A stretch of DNA of 64,000 nucleotides, taken from Oikopleura dioica (taxonomy: Eukaryota; Animalia; Chordata). A program made the translations under genes and the position numbers. The stretch covers positions 1,674,001-1,738,000 of the forward strand of contig OU015567.1 in assembly GCA_907165135.1 (NCBI GenBank). Reading direction: 5' to 3'. Shown piece after piece: positions 2,796-40,213 of the stretch. Position 1 is the first letter of the stretch; every line of letters starts with the position of its first letter. The notes below the pieces were generated by a model, which saw only the letters and a program-made list of their open reading frames with translations, was not told the DNA's origin and did no database searches.

Positions 2796-3932
2796 TAAAA
2801 ATTAACAGAAAGATGTTCTGACTCCCTAACCTCCCTTTGGCAAACAAATCTTATTAAAAAAAAATATCAGGTCTAGCTTGTTCAACGGCAAACAAGTTCC
2901 ATCTTGCATCAGAGTTACCGTCCTTACGCAACGATGACAAGTCCCGCAGATCATCGTTAAAAATGCTTTTCTGTTCATTTTTACGATGATTTGAGCTCAA
3001 CTAGGGAAGTGGGACGGGCAGACGAGTGACCTTATTTTGATCAATCCGTGCCAAGTCTAATAAAAAGCTGTTTTCAATACCGTGACCTCACTAGACCCGT
3101 GGTCAGACCGAACCAGTTTATTTGGGCGTTGCCGTTGCTGATTGGCCCCTGCCACTTTTTCTAATTCTACTTATTGATCTCCTTGGGCACACCTATCCCA
3201 GATCAGAAAAAAAATTGAAACTTTTTCATCAAGAAACTTTTCAAAAAAAACTTTAACACGTGACAGAAATATGGGTCGAAAGGGGGGCCTTAATATCTTT
3301 TCAGACTTTCCCGCTTAGAAAGCAAAATAAAAAACATCACAACAAGAAAAAGAAATGCCGAAGCCAACTGCGAATTCCTGCTCCGGAATCTTTGGTAAAT
3401 ACTTATTCTGTCAGATACATAAATACTCCCTAAATTCAGATGCTTGCCGAACCTCTGGATCATCCTCTTCCAGTGATTGCAAAAAATACAAAGAAAGCTG
3501 CTCCAAGTACGTGAATTTCAAGCGAATCTTCCCCTCCGAGTACGCCCCATCTACCAAAAGCGATTTCCTGATGAAGCAATGATGACCAAGAAGAAACGAT
3601 TTTCCTTCGACAAATTGATCCATTCGTCCATTGTTTTAGTATGACTGTAGTTGAACCGGCCTGTCTGAATCAAATAAAGAGATTACCTTTATCCTTGTTT
3701 CTTTGTGCACTGCCACCTCGACTTCGATAGGTTCAAGTGCTTTTCGAGGTTATTTTTGAGATCGTTCAACTGAATCTTCAACCAACCGTTTCATCAATCG
3801 CCCGAATCGCCACAAATTTTTGCTCCAAACAGGTGATCCGAAACGGCATGCTCCAGAAAACTCACTGGCCCGTAAAAGCAGTGCATATTTAACCTGCCTT
3901 GGAAATGAACACTTTTGCATTTCGAAATTTCA

Positions 3933-5041
3933 ATGAAGCTCTTTTCAACCCTTTTTCCTGCCGCCGCTCTCGCTTCCTGCCCGACCAAGTGGACTTTAGA
4001 TGCATCAACCAGCAACTGCGTCCCCGATGGAGCTTTTGCATTCACCTGTAACGGCGATGGAACTGTGGATTTGACTCTAGAGATTGAGCACTTCTACACG
4101 AATATTCCAGCAGACACGACAACTCTGGTTGCCGGGCTAGTAAACGATGGATGGACACAAGACTCAAATGAACGGGGATGACAATTTTTCTAGTTTCAAC
4201 AAAATTTTTGACGGTTAAGGCATATCATCTCTATTACAGTTATTTAAAATAACGTCGGCTCCGCTTACCTTCTCTCAAGCAGCTGCACAAACGATCACAG
4301 GAAAGGTTCAAAGAGAAATCGGCTTAAAAATATATCTTTTGTATTAATCTTGAACCTCTTGATAAGGAACCTACACGGTTTCCACTTCTGTTGCTGGAGA
4401 AACAACTTGGACTTCCGGATCTTCTGTTACCATTGTTACGGCTGATGCAGGACCGATATCTTACGATGTCACGTGTGAGTTCTCCACTGCAGTCAGTCTT
4501 CAACTTGGACAAATAGCGATTGGCGATGGCAATACTTATGATGGAAATGATGACACGACCGACTTGACCTTCACCTCTTTGCTAGAAAAAGTTGACGCGG
4601 CGACAGGTTATTGGAAATGTAGTAATTTATTGATAATCTTATCTTGAAGGGACCGCAACAGCAGCAACTTCGTGGAGCATCGGAGAAACAGTCAAGCTAA
4701 CACTCACGCCCCCAGCTGCCCTAACCGATGTCATTATCAGTATCGAAAGCTGCCTCGCCTACTCTGACTCTGCTTACTCCGCCGATGAAATTTACATCAC
4801 GCACGGAACTTGCTCAAACGCCAACATAGGCGCAGCCATTGTCGATCAATCCAGCATCATAAGTTTCGAAGCCTTTCAATATGATAGCGCAGCTAGTGAA
4901 TACGCCTACATCGAGTGCAACCTCCAAGTCTGCCTTTCTAGCGATGGATCAACAGCGGATCTGGCCGCATGTGGTGATATTATTACAGCGAATGAGGCTT
5001 CTGCGTCTGCCGATGCTTCGACAAACGGCCTTACTTGCTAA
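3933..5041 (+). CDS. Secreted ZP-domain protein, multi-exon
   Basis: Signal peptide MKLFSTLFPAAALA, then FTCNGDGTVDLTL, YDVTCEF, IISIESCLA and ISFEAFQY...YIECNLQVC, typical of ZP-N/ZP-C. Stop TAA at 5039-5041. Confidence 0.75.
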
Positions 5042-5281: not shown

Positions 5282-6700
5282 ATGAAGAAACGAGATTTTT
5301 GGATTACGGTCGCTACAATTATCATCTTCCTAGGTAATATAATTTACTAAAAATCTGCCGCGACTGTATTTATAATTAAAGCTGCTGGTCTCACGATCGT
5401 TGATCAGTTTTTCCCGTTTTCTTCACTTTTTGAAAATAAAGAATTCATGGATCACGTTACAGGTAGTGAAGTAAAGACTGTTCAGACCATTTTTTTCTTT
5501 GTTTTTTTCAGAAAATCATCCTCTTTCGAAAAGAGCCTTGACCCAAATAGAATTGACCGACTACTGCGCCTCGAACAATCTCAGCATTCCGTATGTCCGA
5601 GAAAAGGACGATTTTGAAATGCTGATCTTTGCTTGGCGTCCCTGTACCTTTCATATGATCAACAGAATCGAAGCGTTGGGGCAGTCAAATTACCGAATTT
5701 TTTTTCCGAATGGCGAGCCCATCAAACAGTTAGAATTTATTCAGAACAAATCTTCCCCCTAAAATTTCTTTCAGTGATTTTTTTGAGAAAGTAAGTGTCT
5801 CAACAAACTTCGACCCAGTTCAAGACACAGATGATGTTTATAAGAGTCATCGTTTGGAAGTACTTCACTTTGAAAAAGAAGATGAGAGCAATTTATTCAA
5901 ACTTTCTCGCGAGTTTACATTTAGCGATGCTTATGCTTACATCAGTTATGCTCGAATATGCAAGGCTAACGGAAAGAAAATTGTCCGAACTCTCGGGAAA
6001 GACGATAAAATCAAAGAATACTCGAAGTATTACGCAGTCAATCACCAAAATAGTACCTTCATCTTTTACATTTACAGGTAAAAATTGAACGATGAAATTT
6101 AAAGAATAGGAAATTAAAAAAATTAAGACTAATGGATGCGAATGAAACCCAGACTTGCTCATCCGACTTTATTTTTTCTCCGAAAAATCCCGAAGACCTC
6201 CAAATCCTCAAGAAAATCTTCAATCATATTGATTTCCAAGCGCTTGGTGTCTACGAGGTTCGGCTCTTTTTTACTACTTCAATTCTAATTCTGTTTTAGA
6301 GATACAGACACACGCTTATTTTCGACATTGAAAAAGTGAATCAAACTCATTTTCATTCGCGACGTCAAAATAAAACGCTCGACTACTCCTTTTTTGAAAA
6401 TACCGGCTTGATGGATCGCTTGAATGTCAAATTTGAAGACAAGGAAGACTACGACTCTGTTCTTTTTGGAAAAGAAGTTGACACGCCTACAGACTATTAT
6501 CTCCACCTTGGCCAAAGGTACTTGTTCTTCTTTCTTTTCTTTGAATTTTAAGCTCGCGAAAATTGCGCGAGTTTTGTTTTCCTCCGCTTGATGAGCCCGC
6601 TCGCTTTCCCTGGATCTACGAGGGCCTAAACGAAATGGAGAAAAAAGAAGCAAAAGATAAAGTAAACGACAGACCAACTATTGAAGCTGATCGTGAATGA
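5282..6700 (+). CDS. Uncharacterised multi-exon gene with an N-terminal hydrophobic segment; weak C-type-lectin-like stretch
   Basis: Chain of open frames separated by short AT-rich introns (LTDYCASNNLSIP; FTFSDAYAYISYARIC). Boundaries are approximate. Confidence 0.35.
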
Positions 6701-6838
6701 TTGAATAAATTGTCGATGAAACAGATCTATTCTGTCAATAAAAACTCGCAAAAAAAAATTACCCATGATTCATTATTTATCTTATTTTGCACCAGGAAAT
6801 CAACATTGGCGCTTGAGTTCGTTTGTGCACCGATTTAA

Positions 6839-7664
6839 GGGTGTCAACAACGATCGAATAAGGGTCTCTCTTATGATTCGACCAATAAATATCTTTTTAT
6901 TCAGCTTACAAGGATTCCAAATCTTTTTCAGATCTGAAATATCTCATCTAGAACACGAGATATGAAACATTCTATAGGCGCGCTAATGCACTAGCGCTTG
7001 AGCTACTGAAGTAGAAATGCACTATTAGAAAGGTGATTTTTTAATTTCCGGTTTTATACATCAAACTATATATTAAAAAAATCTCTATTCGCTGATACCA
7101 ATATTGATAAGATCAGGCAATTTTTTCAAGTTCGAACTGCGCGCCAAAAGTCGCAAACACCTGCTCTTTGGCGCCGGAAAAGATGATTAAGGGATTAATC
7201 AGCATACAATCTGAGCGCACCGGGTGATTGCCGAGGTATTAAACTATTATCCCTGTGAAAATACGAATATTCGAGCTTTAGAAACACCACTTAAATCGAG
7301 CACAAAAAATCGGAAAATCGTATGTTTACATAATGCATGCTGTCCGGATGCATGCATGCAAAATCGAAAAAAGGGCTTTCAGAGGCGTCGTACTTTTGTC
7401 TGAAGATTCTTCACTGAAAATTTCAGATTCACATCTCATCTAGAATTCTAGTAACGGGGGTCAAAAGTTACCCCTATTTTGTATAAAACGGGCTTCCTTT
7501 GAAGTCGGCGGGAGGATTAACGAGAGTACTAATCCAAAATCGGGCTTTCAGAGGCGTCACAAAAGGGTTTAAACTTTCTTTTGACATATGAAGAATCTTG
7601 AACAACCCAACTTAAGGTACCTCTACCGGGGTCAAAAGTTGGCCGAAAATCGTTGTTGACACCC
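6839..7664. mobile_element. 826-bp non-autonomous DNA transposon, Kolobok-like
   Basis: TTAA|GGGTGTCAACAACGAT ... ATCGTTGTTGACACCC|TTAA: perfect 16-bp TIR, TTAA TSD and RR...YY termini. Internal direct repeats GGGCTTTCAGAGGCGTC and GGGGTCAAAAGTT each occur twice. Confidence 0.85.
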
Positions 7665-34848: not shown

Positions 34849-36527
34849 ATGATTTCAAAACTTATTCGTCGACCCCTCTCCACCACGGCCGTTGCTGCCA
34901 GCCGCATCAAGGTGTCAAAGCCTGTTGTAGAAATGGACGGTGATGAAATGACTAGAATTATCTGGGAATGGATCCGAGAAAGAATGATTCTTCCTTATGT
35001 TGACCTCGAGCTGAAATACTTCGATCTGGGAATGGAACATCGTGACTTTACCGATGATCAGGTACATTTTTTCGTCTTGCGACTTCAAGGCAAGAAAAAG
35101 AGAACGCGCCTTGAGCCTTCATATGCTACAAGATCCTTGTAGCCCCTGTAAGAAGAATAACCTTTGTCTCCAGGTCACCATCGATTCCGCCTATGCAACG
35201 CTAGAACACAACGTCGCAGTAAAATGCGCGACGATCACTCCCGACGAGCAGCGAGTCGAAGAATTCGGCTTGAAGCAAATGTGGCGTTCTCCAAATGGAA
35301 CAATCAGAAACATCCTCAACGGCGTTGTCTTCCGAGAGCCCATTCTTTGCAAAAACATTCCTCTCCTCGTTCCTGGGTGGAAGAAGCCCATTTGCATCGG
35401 AAGACACGCTTTTGGTGATCAATACAAAGCTACGGATTATGTCACGCCAAGTGGTGGAAAGTTTGAGATTGTTTTCACGCCAAACGATGGCGGAAAGAAG
35501 GAAGTTATGGAGGTCTTTGACTTTGGAGGTAGATCTTTAATAAAGATGATAATCACATCGGAAAGGTCAAGTTATTGATCAATCTTCAACCCTTCTTTTC
35601 AGAGGAGACTGGCGTTCTTATGGGAATGTACAACACTGATGCTTCCATCAAAGCTTTCGCTCATTCTTCTTTCCAAATGGCTCTTGAAAAAGAATGGCCC
35701 CTCTACTTGTCGACCAAAAACACGATTTTGAAGAAATATGACGGCCGATTCAAAGATATTTTCGAAGAAATCTATCAATCGGTACGACTTATTCTTCTTT
35801 CGAAACGTATAAAAGGATTTAGGACTACAGAAAAGACTTTGAAGCAAAGAAAATCTGGTATGAGCACCGACTTATTGATGATATGGTCGCACAGTGCATG
35901 AAATCAGAAGGTGGATTTGTTTGGGCTTGCAAAAACTACGATGGAGACGTTCAATCTGATACTCTCGCACAAGGTGACTCTTATACTTTCGTATACAGTC
36001 GTGGCTACGAGCTTTATGACCAAAAAAGCCGCGCGATTCGCGGCTTCTAGTTTTTTCCTCTGACTCGTTAAATCATTGATAAATTTGTTCAGGATTCGGT
36101 TCTCTTGGATTGATGACATCGGTCCTCAGAGCTCCAGACGGCAAAACTATCGAGTCCGAAGCAGCCCACGGCACAGTAACCCGTCACTACAGAGAGCACC
36201 AAAAGGGCAACCCCACTTCTACCAACCCAATTGCCTCAATTTTCGCCTGGACCCGCGGCTTGGCTCACCGAGGTCGACTGGACAACAACCAGGACTTGAT
36301 TAAATTCGCCCAAACTGTCGAGAGAGTTTGTGTTGAAGTTGTGGAGAACGGAGTTATGACGAAGGATTTGGCGGGCTGTGTACATGGCGGTTTTAGCGGA
36401 CTCCAGCTTGGAAAAGACTATGGTAAGTTGGTTTCTAAAAGATAGTATTAAAGCTTGTTTTTCAGTTGTTACAGCTGATTTCATGCAAGCAATCGATGAT
36501 GGTATCAAGAAAGCAATGAAAGCTTAA
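34849..36527 (+). CDS. IDH2: NADP-dependent isocitrate dehydrogenase, mitochondrial type
   Basis: Arg/Ser-rich presequence, [58 protein letters not shown] and [17 protein letters not shown]. Confidence 0.95.
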
Positions 36528-36672
36528 ACTAGTTCCGTGCCATTCAACAATGAATTCTTTCCTGAATCCTTTTATTTCTGACATATTCTTCAATGAAAAT
36601 TGCCACTGAAAATATACGTGCTTTGATTCAACATCCATTTTCTCGTTCTTCATGCAGCAGTTTTTCTTCAGC

Positions 36673-38816
36673 ATGTGTGCTAAAATTTCGCAAGTAGCAA
36701 AGAAATCAGTCGGTGTTGCAGCCAAAAAACAAGGAATAAAGGCAAAGAAAAAGGGGCAAAAACCATGGAAACAAAATCAGTGTCAGCCCAAAAAATTTTG
36801 CACTGCGTTTAATTATGCAACGATGAGATTGGAAGACTCTTTTATCCCCCAGGAAACGCCGGTGAAAAAGAACGATCTATCGACGAAGAACTTTGTTTTT
36901 GATGTTGCCAAAAATAAATTCCTGGAAAAGAATGAAAAACCACACACGAAAACATCGTTAATAACAGTATCAATGGTGAATGGAGAAACCGTCCAAACCT
37001 TCGAGAATCTTCTTCACATTTCTAAAGGTCACCGAAAAAATCTTTGGAAGAGATTTAACAATAAGGAGTACACTGTTGAGGGAGAGTACTTCGTCTTCAA
37101 GAAAACGGATGTCCTCTCGAAATTGAAAATCAAGGGCATAGCTAGGGACTATCACGGGAGCGCGAGGGCCCAATTTTCGCTTCCCCAACTACCCGAAATA
37201 GCCATCCATTTTTCTTGATTTTTCAGACAACATATGTTTTCTTACCTGCTGATTCCAAATATGATAGAAAAATTCGCAAAAAAACAATATATATTATGAA
37301 AAACATCGAATTTATCTTTCAAAGATCGAAAATGTATAGAGCCCGTCTTGCCCCGTCATTCTTTTTTCGATATGTTCTCTATCAGAGACTTCTCCTGAAT
37401 GTCTGAAAAAATCTTTTTACGCGGGTTTACGCGTCGCTTGTAATCATCAGATAACTGAGTGAAAGTGAAGGCGCGCTAGTGCTTTACACGCTGCGCGCGG
37501 AGCCCAAAAAGCATTAGCGCGCGCCATAATCTCAGTGGGTGCTTGCTTTGACCCAGTTCACGGAATCTGATGCAAACAATCCCGGGTGATTAACACAAAA
37601 AAGTTACCGGAAGTCCTAAGCTTCATGTTTGCAAATAAATTTTCGAAAAATAATAAGCAAGTGACCCAGAAAACTCGGGTGAAAAATCGGTCAGCTTTAA
37701 GTGTAGTCTTAAGTTTGTCTTCCGCAGCATTTTTCGATCAAAAAGATTTTGGTATCATCAGAATCAGCTGAAAAATCCATACTTATGAGTAAATTTTTAC
37801 GAAAATCGAAGGGCAATCGTTTTCCCGTGAAAGTCCCTAGGCATAGCTTTCGGCAAATCGGCAACCAATCTTTGCAGTAAAAATTCATGGGTTCGAGAAG
37901 ACTGGGGTTACCCGAAAGACAGAGCGGTGTCATCGAAAAATACCCAACCTGATCAACAGGTAAACGAACAGAGAAAATAAGGTCTAAGAGTCATCTCTAT
38001 TTTTAGAAGAAGAATTCTTCCAGTAAGAACGTTTCAAGCGATACCCCTAACAACGTCGTTTTCCATGGGGCCAGCGAATACGAAGATCCAAAACCTACAA
38101 GAGTCATCTATTCAGCATTTTCCAAAGAAGCAATTTCTTTCTACTCACTCCCGGTCCTCGACTTTTTCCGATTATACAGAAACAAATGCTATTATGAAGA
38201 GGAATCGCTGCTCATTTTTCCTCCCAAAGAAGGGGACTCTCGCAAAAGAGGTTTCAGAAAAGAGGCTTTCTTAAGACTTCAAATTCCTTCTGGTTCTCTT
38301 CGTAAAGAAAGCCCTGATCTTCTGCCTGAGATGCTTTTGTTTGAAAGAGCTATTCCTTTCACGCCTGAAATATGCTCTTCATGAATGGATATAAATGAAA
38401 AATATTGATTTCTTCTATGATTCGTAAATTACGATTATTAAATATTCCTAAATATCTCGCAAAAGTACCGAAGAGATGCGACCCCGAAAGCATTCAAAAC
38501 TACATCGAGGAGAAAGTCGAATCCACCGTAAAAAGAATTAAACTTATCATGGGAAACCCAAACGCTGACACAAGCGAATCAAATGCAGTCGAGAATCTCG
38601 CCAAAGAGCTGTTAAATATAACGAAAAAATTGGAATTGATGCAGAAGCGACTTGAAAGCGGAACTCTTCATTTTCTTGGGCATGAACCTTGGAGATTCAT
38701 CCCTAAAGCAAATAAAATCATGGCGATTCGAGCTGCTCTTCAGTCAAAAGTAAGATTCTATATGCCAAGTATCGAAGCGTTTAAATATTTATTCTTAGAA
38801 AACGACGATCTTCTAA
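36673..38816 (+). CDS. Orphan basic protein, paralog A (H3-tail-like N-terminus)
   Basis: MCAKISQVAKKSVG...; shares NGETVQ, TVEGEY, KELFLSRLK and LMQKRL..G.LHFLGHEPWR....KIMAIRAALQS with paralog B. Confidence 0.7.
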
Positions 38817-38988
38817 GCTGCTGAGTACATCTTCACATTTGGTATGGCAATGTGCTTTACCTTATTTATTTATCTTCACCTTTCTTTTATCTTCACACTG
38901 CTTCAAAAGATACAACGATTGTATTGAGCACACAAAAAATTAAAAAACCTGACGATGCATCTTTTCGTTACCATTTTCTTTCTTCAGC

Positions 38989-40213
38989 ATGTGCGCTAAA
39001 TCCTCACAAGTAGCAAGAAAATCAGTCGGTTCCTCAGTCTCAAAAGCAGCCAAAGAGGCAGTTTCGAAGAAAAAGAAGAAGTCGAAGAAATCAAAGAAAC
39101 GGACTCTCGACCTGATCATCGACGAAGAAGTGCCGCCTATTAAAGTCCCAAAAATTGACGCAGATGACTTCGATCTTGTCGATTCCTATCAAGAGGTACA
39201 ACTTCTATCGTAGAATGTAGAGAAATCTTGTCTTTTAGACCGTCGAAAATGGAGAGACCGTTCAGATATTCGATAGTTTTCTTCAGTTTTCCAAGTCTCA
39301 TCGAAAAAAGCTGCGAAAAAAAGTTGGCGAGGGGAAGTTCACTGTTGAGGGCGAGTACTACGTCTTCGAGAAATCGCCTGGCTATCCGAAATCAAAAGTA
39401 AAAGCGGAACTTTTCAACGGCATGGGGCCATCTTGGAAGGACATGCCGAAACCTGCATGGAAAATCGCTCAAGAAGTTTGCTTCTCATTATTAAAATACT
39501 CTGACAGTTCAGTTTAGCAGAAAGAAGTAGACTGTAAACCAGGAAAAAACGACAAAATAAAGCTCCGTGACGTAGAAGCTTATGAAGATCCAAAACCGAA
39601 AGAATTCAAATTATTCTCCAACGAAGAAATTCTTCTCTATACTGATCCTCCTCTCGACTTCTTCAAGCTCTTCGAAAATGGCGACTTTTACGAGAGCGCA
39701 AAGCTGCTCGTTTTCCCTTCAGAAGAAGATGGGTCACTCAAAAGAGGCATCTCAGCAAAAAATTATCGAAAGCATTCCACTTTGCTTGCAGATTGCCCCG
39801 ATATTCCACCAGAGATGTTTTTCTATGAAAGAACTGTTCCTTTCACGCCTGAAAAATGCTCTTTATGATCGGGATAATTTTTAGAAGAATATTAAAAAGC
39901 CAAATCTGTGTCACAAATATCCTCAAAAGTGCCGAAAAACTACGATCCCGAAAAACTTCAAGAGAGCCTTGAACTTGTGGTTACTTCCACTACAGCTGGT
40001 ATCAAAACTGTGATGGCAAGGCCTGATGATCATCCAAAAGGGAAAGACGGGCTCGAAAGTCTCACAAATACTCTTCTCAAGGTGAACAAGAAGCTGGATC
40101 TGATGCAGAAACGACTTGATAACGGATCTCTTCACTTTCTTGGGCACGAGCCTTGGCGAATCCTCGATAAATCAACAAAAATCATGGCGATCCGAGCTGC
40201 TCTTCAATCATAG
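38989..40213 (+). CDS. Orphan basic protein, paralog B (H3-tail-like N-terminus)
   Basis: [14 protein letters not shown]..., a poly-Lys NLS-like tract, and the same conserved blocks as paralog A. Confidence 0.75.

Follow-up and report, generated by a model that had tools for sequence, protein, structure and literature searches.

The 64,000-nucleotide stretch of DNA analysed here (the window) belongs to chromosome 2 of Oikopleura dioica OKI2018_I69 and carries two tandem multi-exon paralogs, A (positions 36673-38816) and B (38989-40213), which are read on the forward strand as are all the gene features given below. The explanation favoured, by a modest balance of probability, is that of a real tandem gene pair restricted to larvaceans in which an N-terminal linear motif acts as a regulated docking or phosphorylation site, the likeness of this motif to the tail of histone H3 being more probably a convergence than the mark of a decoy. 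A sequence-only reading of the window had proposed that both proteins begin with a mimic of the H3 tail and form a lineage-specific family of H3K9/S10 decoys or adaptors, with an ARKS versus AKKS difference that could separate the two paralogs functionally.

The N-termini quoted in that reading were recovered at 36673 for A and at 38989 for B. The two proteins have in common the start MCAK[I/S]SQVA[K/R]KSVG, encoded by positions 36673-36714 in A (AKKS version, MCAKISQVAKKSVG) and by positions 38989-39030 in B (ARKS version, 14 residues), and in the genome searched (64.28 Mb, 19 contigs) this motif is confined to these two genes. When the first 14 codons of A and B were compared, 12 of the 14 residues were identical and four changes were synonymous (dS 0.60, dN 0.10), corresponding to a ratio of nonsynonymous to synonymous divergence (omega) of 0.17, whereas the linker that follows the motif (about 50 aligned codons) was 27% identical. 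The earlier description of a conserved N-terminal block followed by a diverged linker is in agreement with these values. Since most of the changes are synonymous and 12/14 residues are identical, the constraint should act at the protein level, and the common start would be a short linear motif under purifying selection.

Three blocks of A and B could be aligned at the DNA level: 36663-36729 with 38979-39045 (79% over 67 nt, the highest identity in the genes), 36979-37133 with 39248-39402 (71%) and 38079-38746 with 39581-40210 (64%). The proteins are 49% identical in the NGETVQ...TVEGEY block, 38-41% in the exon of the YEDPKP...PFTPE block and 54% in the C-terminal exon. Omega was 0.38-0.54 between A and B in the blocks other than the motif, and 0.13-0.21 between B and a metagenome ortholog (L025; dS 0.7-1.2). 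Because omega lies below 1 in every paralog block (0.17-0.54) and at these low values against L025, A and B are to be regarded as real protein-coding genes; by the same comparisons no other short stretch of the protein is as constrained as the N-terminal block. Recent gene conversion does not account for the motif identity, the synonymous divergence (pS) of the motif (0.41) being similar to that of the rest of the gene (0.47-0.55).

Translation most likely begins at the methionine of MCAK in both paralogs. In A this ATG is found at 36673 (MCAKISQVAKKSVGVAAKKQGIKAKKK), while the public model begins at an internal methionine at 36823; in B it is found at 38989. The DNA alignment of A with B opens at a common acceptor-like site, ...TTCTTCAGC, 10 nt ahead of the ATG, and the pyrimidine-rich ...TTCTTCAG followed by C occupies positions 36663-36672 before the ATG of A and, conserved, positions 38979-38988 before that of B. 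This site is a candidate acceptor for spliced-leader trans-splicing, with the start codon immediately after it. The MCAK start is likely because exon 1 of B holds no other methionine and because both the protein conservation and the TTCTTCAG-C site begin there; translation from another position, which the sequence-only reading had named among the findings that would refute it, is unlikely for the same reasons.

A basic-basic-Ser-Val core is common to both copies at residues 10-13 (RKSV in B, KKSV in A), and the basophilic (Aurora/PKA-type) consensus [R/K]-x-[S/T]-hydrophobic is matched by the sequence of both paralogs. Because this core is kept in both copies and fits a basophilic kinase consensus, the motif may be a site of regulated docking or phosphorylation at the very start of the protein, with [R/K]KSV as the putative core for Aurora/PKA-type kinases; judged by its sequence, the core fits such sites equally well as it fits H3S10. 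The likeness to H3 residues 1-12 would be the expected convergence of two Lys/Ala/Ser-rich tails, rather than a decoy. In the same explanation paralog B is intact, and paralog A contains a miniature inverted-repeat transposable element (MITE) which its public gene model splices out via a cryptic GT donor, losing about 30 ancestral codons. Several points weigh against the docking or phosphorylation site. As a four-residue consensus match, the kinase site would be no better founded than mimicry of H3. A match of 7/12 residues in register with H3, the extreme N-terminal position (expected about 0.1-0.2 times per proteome) and a weak pass in docking (0.39 versus 0.01, see below) rather fit a mimic, and the conserved Cys2 and Gln-Val-Ala are left unexplained by a simple kinase site. 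Furthermore, the start site, the introns of B and the expression of the genes are modelled rather than observed.

Only two copies of the gene, in tandem, are present in the genome. Homology searches were carried out with the exons one by one and with P0001, the public protein of paralog A (CAG5109863.1, 'Oidioi.mRNA.OKI2018_I69.chr2.g4338.t1', 340 amino acids), as the full-length query, the joining of exons being used only as a reading-frame check. A HMMER profile of the C-terminal exon gave three true matches among 1.84 billion representative proteins: P0001 itself, a 94-residue fragment from an ENA metagenome contig (P0002) and a 147-residue Tara metatranscriptome fragment (P0003), a distant relative which keeps PEM..FE and LHF[FL]GH.PWR. 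Two further profile matches, P0004 and P0005, were low-complexity or repeat noise. Word searches returned no match with the first open reading frame (ORF) of A, P0001 only with P0001, and P0006/L027 only with exon 1 of B; the sole match of the JGI metagenome scan (L026) was a bacterial antisense chance match. On the basis of these searches, A and B are a tandem pair restricted to larvaceans (O. dioica and close relatives), and the words tandem, orphan and lineage-specific chosen in the sequence-only reading were well taken, the genome holding two copies, and the 1.84 billion proteins and the metagenomes hardly any relatives.

No N-terminus of an ortholog from another lineage was recovered in these searches, P0002/L025 and P0003 being without a 5' end and L027 without a matching one. 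In the latter, a Tara contig, the 3' half of exon 1 of B is found at 97% identity: L027:1-680 is 97% identical to B over 39121-39288 and breaks from it at 39121, and the 506 nt that precede this stretch in the contig bear no relation to B and have no counterpart in this genome, whether in DNA or in protein. The break lies after a TTTAG acceptor-like site, and the upstream exon-like ORF ends in a GT donor. The contig may be a chimeric scaffold, the other explanation being a population variant with a rearranged exon 1 of B, and it is uninformative on the N-terminus.

Each protein comprises about 350-400 residues and is lysine-rich and mostly disordered. The two blocks named in the sequence-only reading, the short and beta-rich NGETVQ...TVEGEY and LMQKRL..G.LHFLGHEPWR, are both present, and a third conserved block, YEDPKP...LDFF...PFTPE, lies in the middle between them. 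In AlphaFold2 (AF2) models the predicted local distance difference test score (pLDDT) was 41 for the whole protein, 66 for the C-terminus and about 75 in a C-terminal helical hairpin, which holds the invariant LHFLGHEPWR loop and is followed by a third helix. Apart from these C-terminal helices the models are of low quality. No Pfam family was detected for any exon or for P0001 (E<=5), no match below E 0.001 was given by Foldseek against the PDB, and no usable relative or neighbour was found with PDB sequence profiles or in the ESM Atlas; matches to Tad_C, zf-TRM13 and RP-C were below cut-off and were dismissed. The histone fold (PF00125) is absent from the AF2 models, and its matches in the genome exclude this locus, in agreement with the earlier statement that no histone fold is visible. 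Lysine runs resembling nuclear localisation signals (NLS) follow the motif in both paralogs, and a nuclear location of the A and B proteins is therefore predicted.

Gene A extends from the ATG at 36673 to a stop codon ending at 38816, and CAG5109863.1 (g4338.t1) covers it from the internal methionine at 36823; all the exons of this protein could be placed exactly in the window (36823-38813). Exon 1, bounded as in the annotated model, corresponds to 36673-37085 and holds the NGETVQ...TVEG block. The annotated GT-AG intron 1 (37086-37877, 792 nt), which takes out the transposon along with about 30 codons that belonged to the ancestral exon, is followed by exon 2 (37878-37959, from the exon mapping of P0001) and by exon 3 (38007-38382) with the YEDPKP...LDFF...PFTPEICSS block. 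Intron 3 (38383-38465, 83 nt) is of the non-canonical GA-AG type. Exon 4 (38466-38749) codes for the helical C-terminal domain with LMQKRL..G.LHFLGHEPWR and KIMAIRAALQS, and exon 5 (38799-38816) for KTTIF and the stop. Gene B is intact and was modelled with four exons (38989-40213, about 357 residues). Its exon 1 (38989-39195) carries the motif together with an acidic stretch and an NLS-like run rich in lysine (KKKKKSKKSKKR), and residue 1 is the sole methionine; exon 2 (39239-39475), with the NGETVQ...TVEGEYYVF block and a tail, has a GT-AG intron on either side (43 and 45 nt); exon 3 (39521-39866) precedes a GA-AG intron (39867-39929, 63 nt) modelled by analogy to the annotated intron of A; exon 4 with the stop codon (39930-40213) codes for the helical C-terminal domain and shows an omega of 0.21 against the ortholog L025. 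The introns of B, like both translation starts, are thus model features.

The GA donor was taken from the annotated model of A (TCAT/GA...AAAAG/TA, the slashes marking the splice sites), and the same site (t/ga) is kept in B and in the metagenome ortholog L025. A GA-AG intron occupies the same phase-1 position in A, in B and in this ortholog from a divergent lineage (L025:183-244), the body of the intron being not conserved. About 11% of the introns are non-canonical in the OKI2018_I69 genome (PMC8008620). A GC-AG donor for intron 3 and a GG donor for intron 1 of A, considered at first, gave way to the sites used in the annotated protein, GA-AG and GT-AG respectively. Paralog B seems to have no entry in the public protein annotation, in which only A was found: word and profile searches that should find an annotated B protein returned none. 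The gene directly upstream of A ends at 36527, and its translation resembles an NADP-isocitrate dehydrogenase.

The coding exon of A is interrupted by a hAT-like non-autonomous transposon of 697 bp (37143-37839, no strand assigned). It is bordered by an 8-bp target-site duplication, GGCATAGC, at 37135-37142 and 37840-37847, and its terminal inverted repeats have arms of 30 nt which begin TAGGGAC and are 80% complementary. At least 43 matches were found in the genome, the full-length copies being 89-97% identical (best 97%, at C5:1458912), and the element contains short ORFs only and no transposase ORF. Its sequence identifies it as a young hAT-type MITE. The unbroken exon 2 of B represents the ancestral state, and A is in frame to 37959 once the element and one copy of the duplication are removed. 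The annotated intron (37086-37877) starts from a cryptic GT donor which lies in the exon, within the conserved TVEGEY block. Paralog A is probably still transcribed and spliced because the annotation of OKI2018_I69 was built with RNA-seq intron hints (PMC8008620). The insertion could represent either the birth of an intron or a damaged allele.

The best surviving alternative, possible though on the whole doubtful, considers paralog A as a damaged or decaying copy in which the MITE either truncates the protein to 181 residues or removes part of a conserved block, so that only B works and the ARKS/AKKS difference is meaningless. The intact 8-bp duplication and the 97% identity to another copy indeed indicate a recent insertion in an exon which is unbroken in B, the straight read-through frame stops at 37216-37218, and the conserved EYFVFKK residues are skipped by the annotated model. 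However, the public model, made with RNA-seq hints (PMC8008620), splices in frame around the insertion and includes a GA-AG intron, of a kind that should normally be called only with read support. The downstream exons are open with omega below 1, a value that mostly reflects the time before insertion. The functional split between ARKS and AKKS paralogs put forward in the sequence-only reading is in any case undercut by the presence of a young transposon in the coding exon of A.

To appreciate the likeness with H3, the N-termini were compared with the H3 of this genome (L013:1483-1893), which has a canonical tail. QVARKSVG of B matches QTARKSTG of H3 at 6/8 positions with an offset of one residue, exactly as had been noted from the sequence. 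On a single ungapped diagonal against H3 residues 1-12, B is identical at 7/12 and A at 6/12 positions, and conservative K/R, S/T and V/T pairs occupy four more positions of the B-H3 alignment. Opposite R8 of H3 stands Arg in B (ARKS, residues 9-12) and Lys in A (AKKS). Against shuffled sequences of the same composition as the first 30 residues, p was 0.007 (6/8), 0.014 (7/12) and 0.022 (BLOSUM score) for B, and 0.17, 0.19 and 0.027 for A on the same three measures, the identities of A being not significant and the p values of the two paralogs being non-independent. Under the assumption of independent residues and average composition, a proteome of 17,000 proteins should contain by chance about 7 matches of at least 6/8 to QTARKSTG anywhere and about 0.18 starting within the first 10 residues, about 330 proteins with such a match to any 8-mer of the H3 tail, and about 0.12 with 7/12 at offsets 0-3; a K/A/S-rich composition raises these expectations about 2-fold for the 8-mer and about 5-fold for the 12-mer. 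Because of these shuffle values and proteome-wide expectations, the likeness is only marginally unusual: it is real, and mildly unusual in its N-terminal register, but on the sequences compared it stays statistically marginal and within chance for a genome-wide read-through. Descent of the motif from H3 was rejected, there being no similarity to H3 genes at the codon level.

When the genome was searched with the 40-residue H3 tail, neither A nor B was returned (E<=10). The same search gave the H3 genes and a cluster, on another chromosome, of tail-bearing ORFs (L028, G000:C4:6148500-6156500) which start with a near-perfect H3 tail, 70-78% identical over 33 residues, and continue with non-histone sequence, for example MARTSQIARKSCGGLAPRRQLATNAARKT. 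These ORFs are found at L028:1240-1482, 3924-4166, 6201-6443, 6625-6864 and 6861-7076, and further ORFs with H3K27-like KAARKSAPAT pieces lie near them. They have no Pfam match, none of them is among the PF00125 fold matches at E<=1e-10, and they were not seen among the H3 variants named in the searched parts of the published histone paper (PMC3156773). Two H3 genes, L017 and L018 (G000:C2:9656764 and 9705480), read ARKT at K9 and AAKKS at K27, so that AKKS occurs naturally in an H3 tail of this animal; they are probably among the male-specific H3t isoforms.

The second alternative is that the N-terminus is a functional H3 K9/S10 mimic, in which an H3K9 methyltransferase would place methyl groups on Lys11, HP1-type chromodomains would read this residue, Aurora B would use Ser12 as a phospho-switch, and the proteins would serve as decoys or adaptors on the heterochromatin machinery. 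This is unlikely, but it can call on the 6/8 and in-register (plus one) 7/12 matches of B (shuffle p 0.007-0.02), on the position of the motif as the most constrained stretch of the protein, and on the lysine-rich NLS-like runs that adjoin it. The genome also holds the required partners, with at least 27 chromodomain matches, including the HP1-like L031, and 2-3 loci with a Pre-SET methyltransferase domain (among them C4:6652009 and C1:13178803). At least five of the chromodomain matches lie within about 4 kb at G000:C4:7576314-7580412 (L032, L033), which suggests a tandem array of chromodomain genes.

Docking of the HP1-like chromodomain of this genome (L031:1471-1662) with residues 1-40 of B (window 38989-39108) gave a score of 0.39 against 0.01 for the best control, the runs showing at least 81% contact agreement and a partner pLDDT of at least 50. 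The pass mark is reached by 51/78 solved complexes and 2/108 mismatched pairs, and scores of 0.60 or below include only 5/78 solved complexes and all 4 passing mismatches (of 180, harder ones counted). The model thus sees the start of B as H3-like, which is weak support and not proof of binding: unless there was prior reason to expect the pairing, weak passes of this kind are wrong in most cases, and this one may reflect memory of the many solved chromodomain-H3 complexes.

Other results argue against mimicry. The H3-tail search of the genome misses A and B and yet returns true H3-tail-like ORFs, and the DNA of the motif has no codon-level kinship to H3 genes. Paralog A reads AKKS without the Arg, and its identities to H3 are not significant (p about 0.18). 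G9a-type enzymes require Arg next to the target Lys. A Cys stands before Ala, so that no free H3-like Ala1 is available and the conserved Cys2 is unexplained, and both Thr positions of H3 (T6, T11) are Val. Neither protein contains a PxVxL motif, and a role as HP1 chromoshadow ligand was rejected on this account. Only two non-independent sequences bear the motif, with no ortholog N-terminus recovered, and an earlier ARKS-based claim of mimicry has failed (PMC10833455). Of the decoy or adaptor proposal, the lineage-restricted family, the constrained N-terminus, the presence of the machinery in the genome and a weak docking pass stand in its favour, whereas the likeness on which it was founded is marginal at genome scale. 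Its most complete form seems rather improbable, namely that of a larvacean non-histone nuclear protein with a selected H3 1-12 surface (A-[K/R]-x-x-Q-x-A-[R/K]-K-S-x-G) which would be modified and read like H3K9/S10 and would act as a tail decoy or adaptor competing for HP1, H3K9-methyltransferase and Aurora B in an unusually compact chromatin.

There is little likelihood that the conserved feature is Cys2, either as a Cys/Arg N-degron after removal of Met or as an S-acylation site beside basic residues, the H3 likeness being coincidental. Cys2 is kept in both paralogs despite a synonymous TGT/TGC change, and it has a Lys nearby, a feature also of known degron substrates with an MC start. The genome holds an arginyl-transferase (ATE_C, C4:11426469-11427155), but no PCO_ADO thiol dioxygenase (PF07847) was found in the exon-by-exon search, by which absence is not proven; an ADO-dependent Cys N-degron was rejected on this result. 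Moreover, the conservation reaches residue 14, beyond residues 1-4, and the support comes from two related sequences only. With ATE_C present and PCO_ADO not found in that search, the enzymatic Cys N-degron branch may have been lost in this animal. Finally, conservation of the first 42 nt for RNA-level reasons (trans-splice acceptor context, translation initiation) rather than for the peptide, which would account for a DNA similarity starting 10 nt before the ATG at the TTCTTCAGC site and for the peak of DNA identity between the genes in this stretch (79% over 67 nt), is hardly credible, 4 of the 6-7 nucleotide changes in the 14 codons being synonymous with 12/14 residues identical and an omega of 0.17.

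On the evidence at hand, the locus offers a selected orphan gene pair, apparently partly unannotated, with a sharply conserved N-terminal linear motif. It further provides a clean case of a young hAT MITE in a coding exon that is treated as an intron, and it draws attention to H3-tail-bearing ORFs at another place in the genome whose likeness is much stronger. If the motif were instead a true mimic, the pair would be a rare case of an endogenous protein copying the H3 tail from its own N-terminus and not from an internal site, and would give a handle on the titration of heterochromatin readers in an animal noted for its novel histone variants and for the extreme compactness of its genome.

Among known systems, the insertion in A resembles the transposon-derived introns of larvaceans, MITE-origin non-canonical introns having been described for Fritillaria (for background, PMC13326754). 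As in these, a coding exon harbours a non-autonomous DNA transposon, which the gene model splices out; unlike them, A uses a cryptic exonic GT and a downstream AG instead of the ends of the element, and its splicing is known from annotation only. With the H3 tail itself (L013:1483-1893), B shares the residues A, Q, A, R, K, S and G of positions 1-12, and both are K/A/S-rich disordered N-termini. In contrast to it, A and B have no histone fold, have a Cys before the Ala, Ser for K4 and Val for T6 and T11, with Lys for R8 in paralog A; their codon usage is unrelated and they are below the reach of the H3-tail genome search. The ORF cluster on C4 (G000:C4:6149700-6155200) is similar in combining an H3-like start with the lack of a histone fold, its tail MARTSQIARKSCGG matching B at 8/12 positions. 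Its members, however, start at Met-Ala-Arg-Thr and keep 70-78% H3 identity over 33 residues including the K27 region, compared to which A and B are far weaker look-alikes without kinship at the DNA level.

The proposal of mimicry also recalls ORF8 of SARS-CoV-2, in which a short ARKS match was likewise proposed from the sequence as an H3 mimic. A follow-up on its ARKS(AP) motif saw no nuclear localisation and no effect on H3 marks, and the claim is disputed (PMC10833455); by this analogy, mimicry is poorly predicted by the presence of ARKS alone. The ARK(S/T) mimics established by experiment comprise the G9a automethylation site, LIG1, H1.4 K26, WIZ, CDYL and ADNP (PMC10611923, PMC3022755). 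B, and not A, which lacks the Arg, agrees with them in that its A-R-K-S core lies in a segment which is basic and disordered, the protein being probably nuclear. Their sites are methylated and reader-bound by experiment whereas that of B is known here from its sequence, and they are mostly internal, whereas the motif of B stands at the extreme N-terminus and is H3-like over 12 residues.

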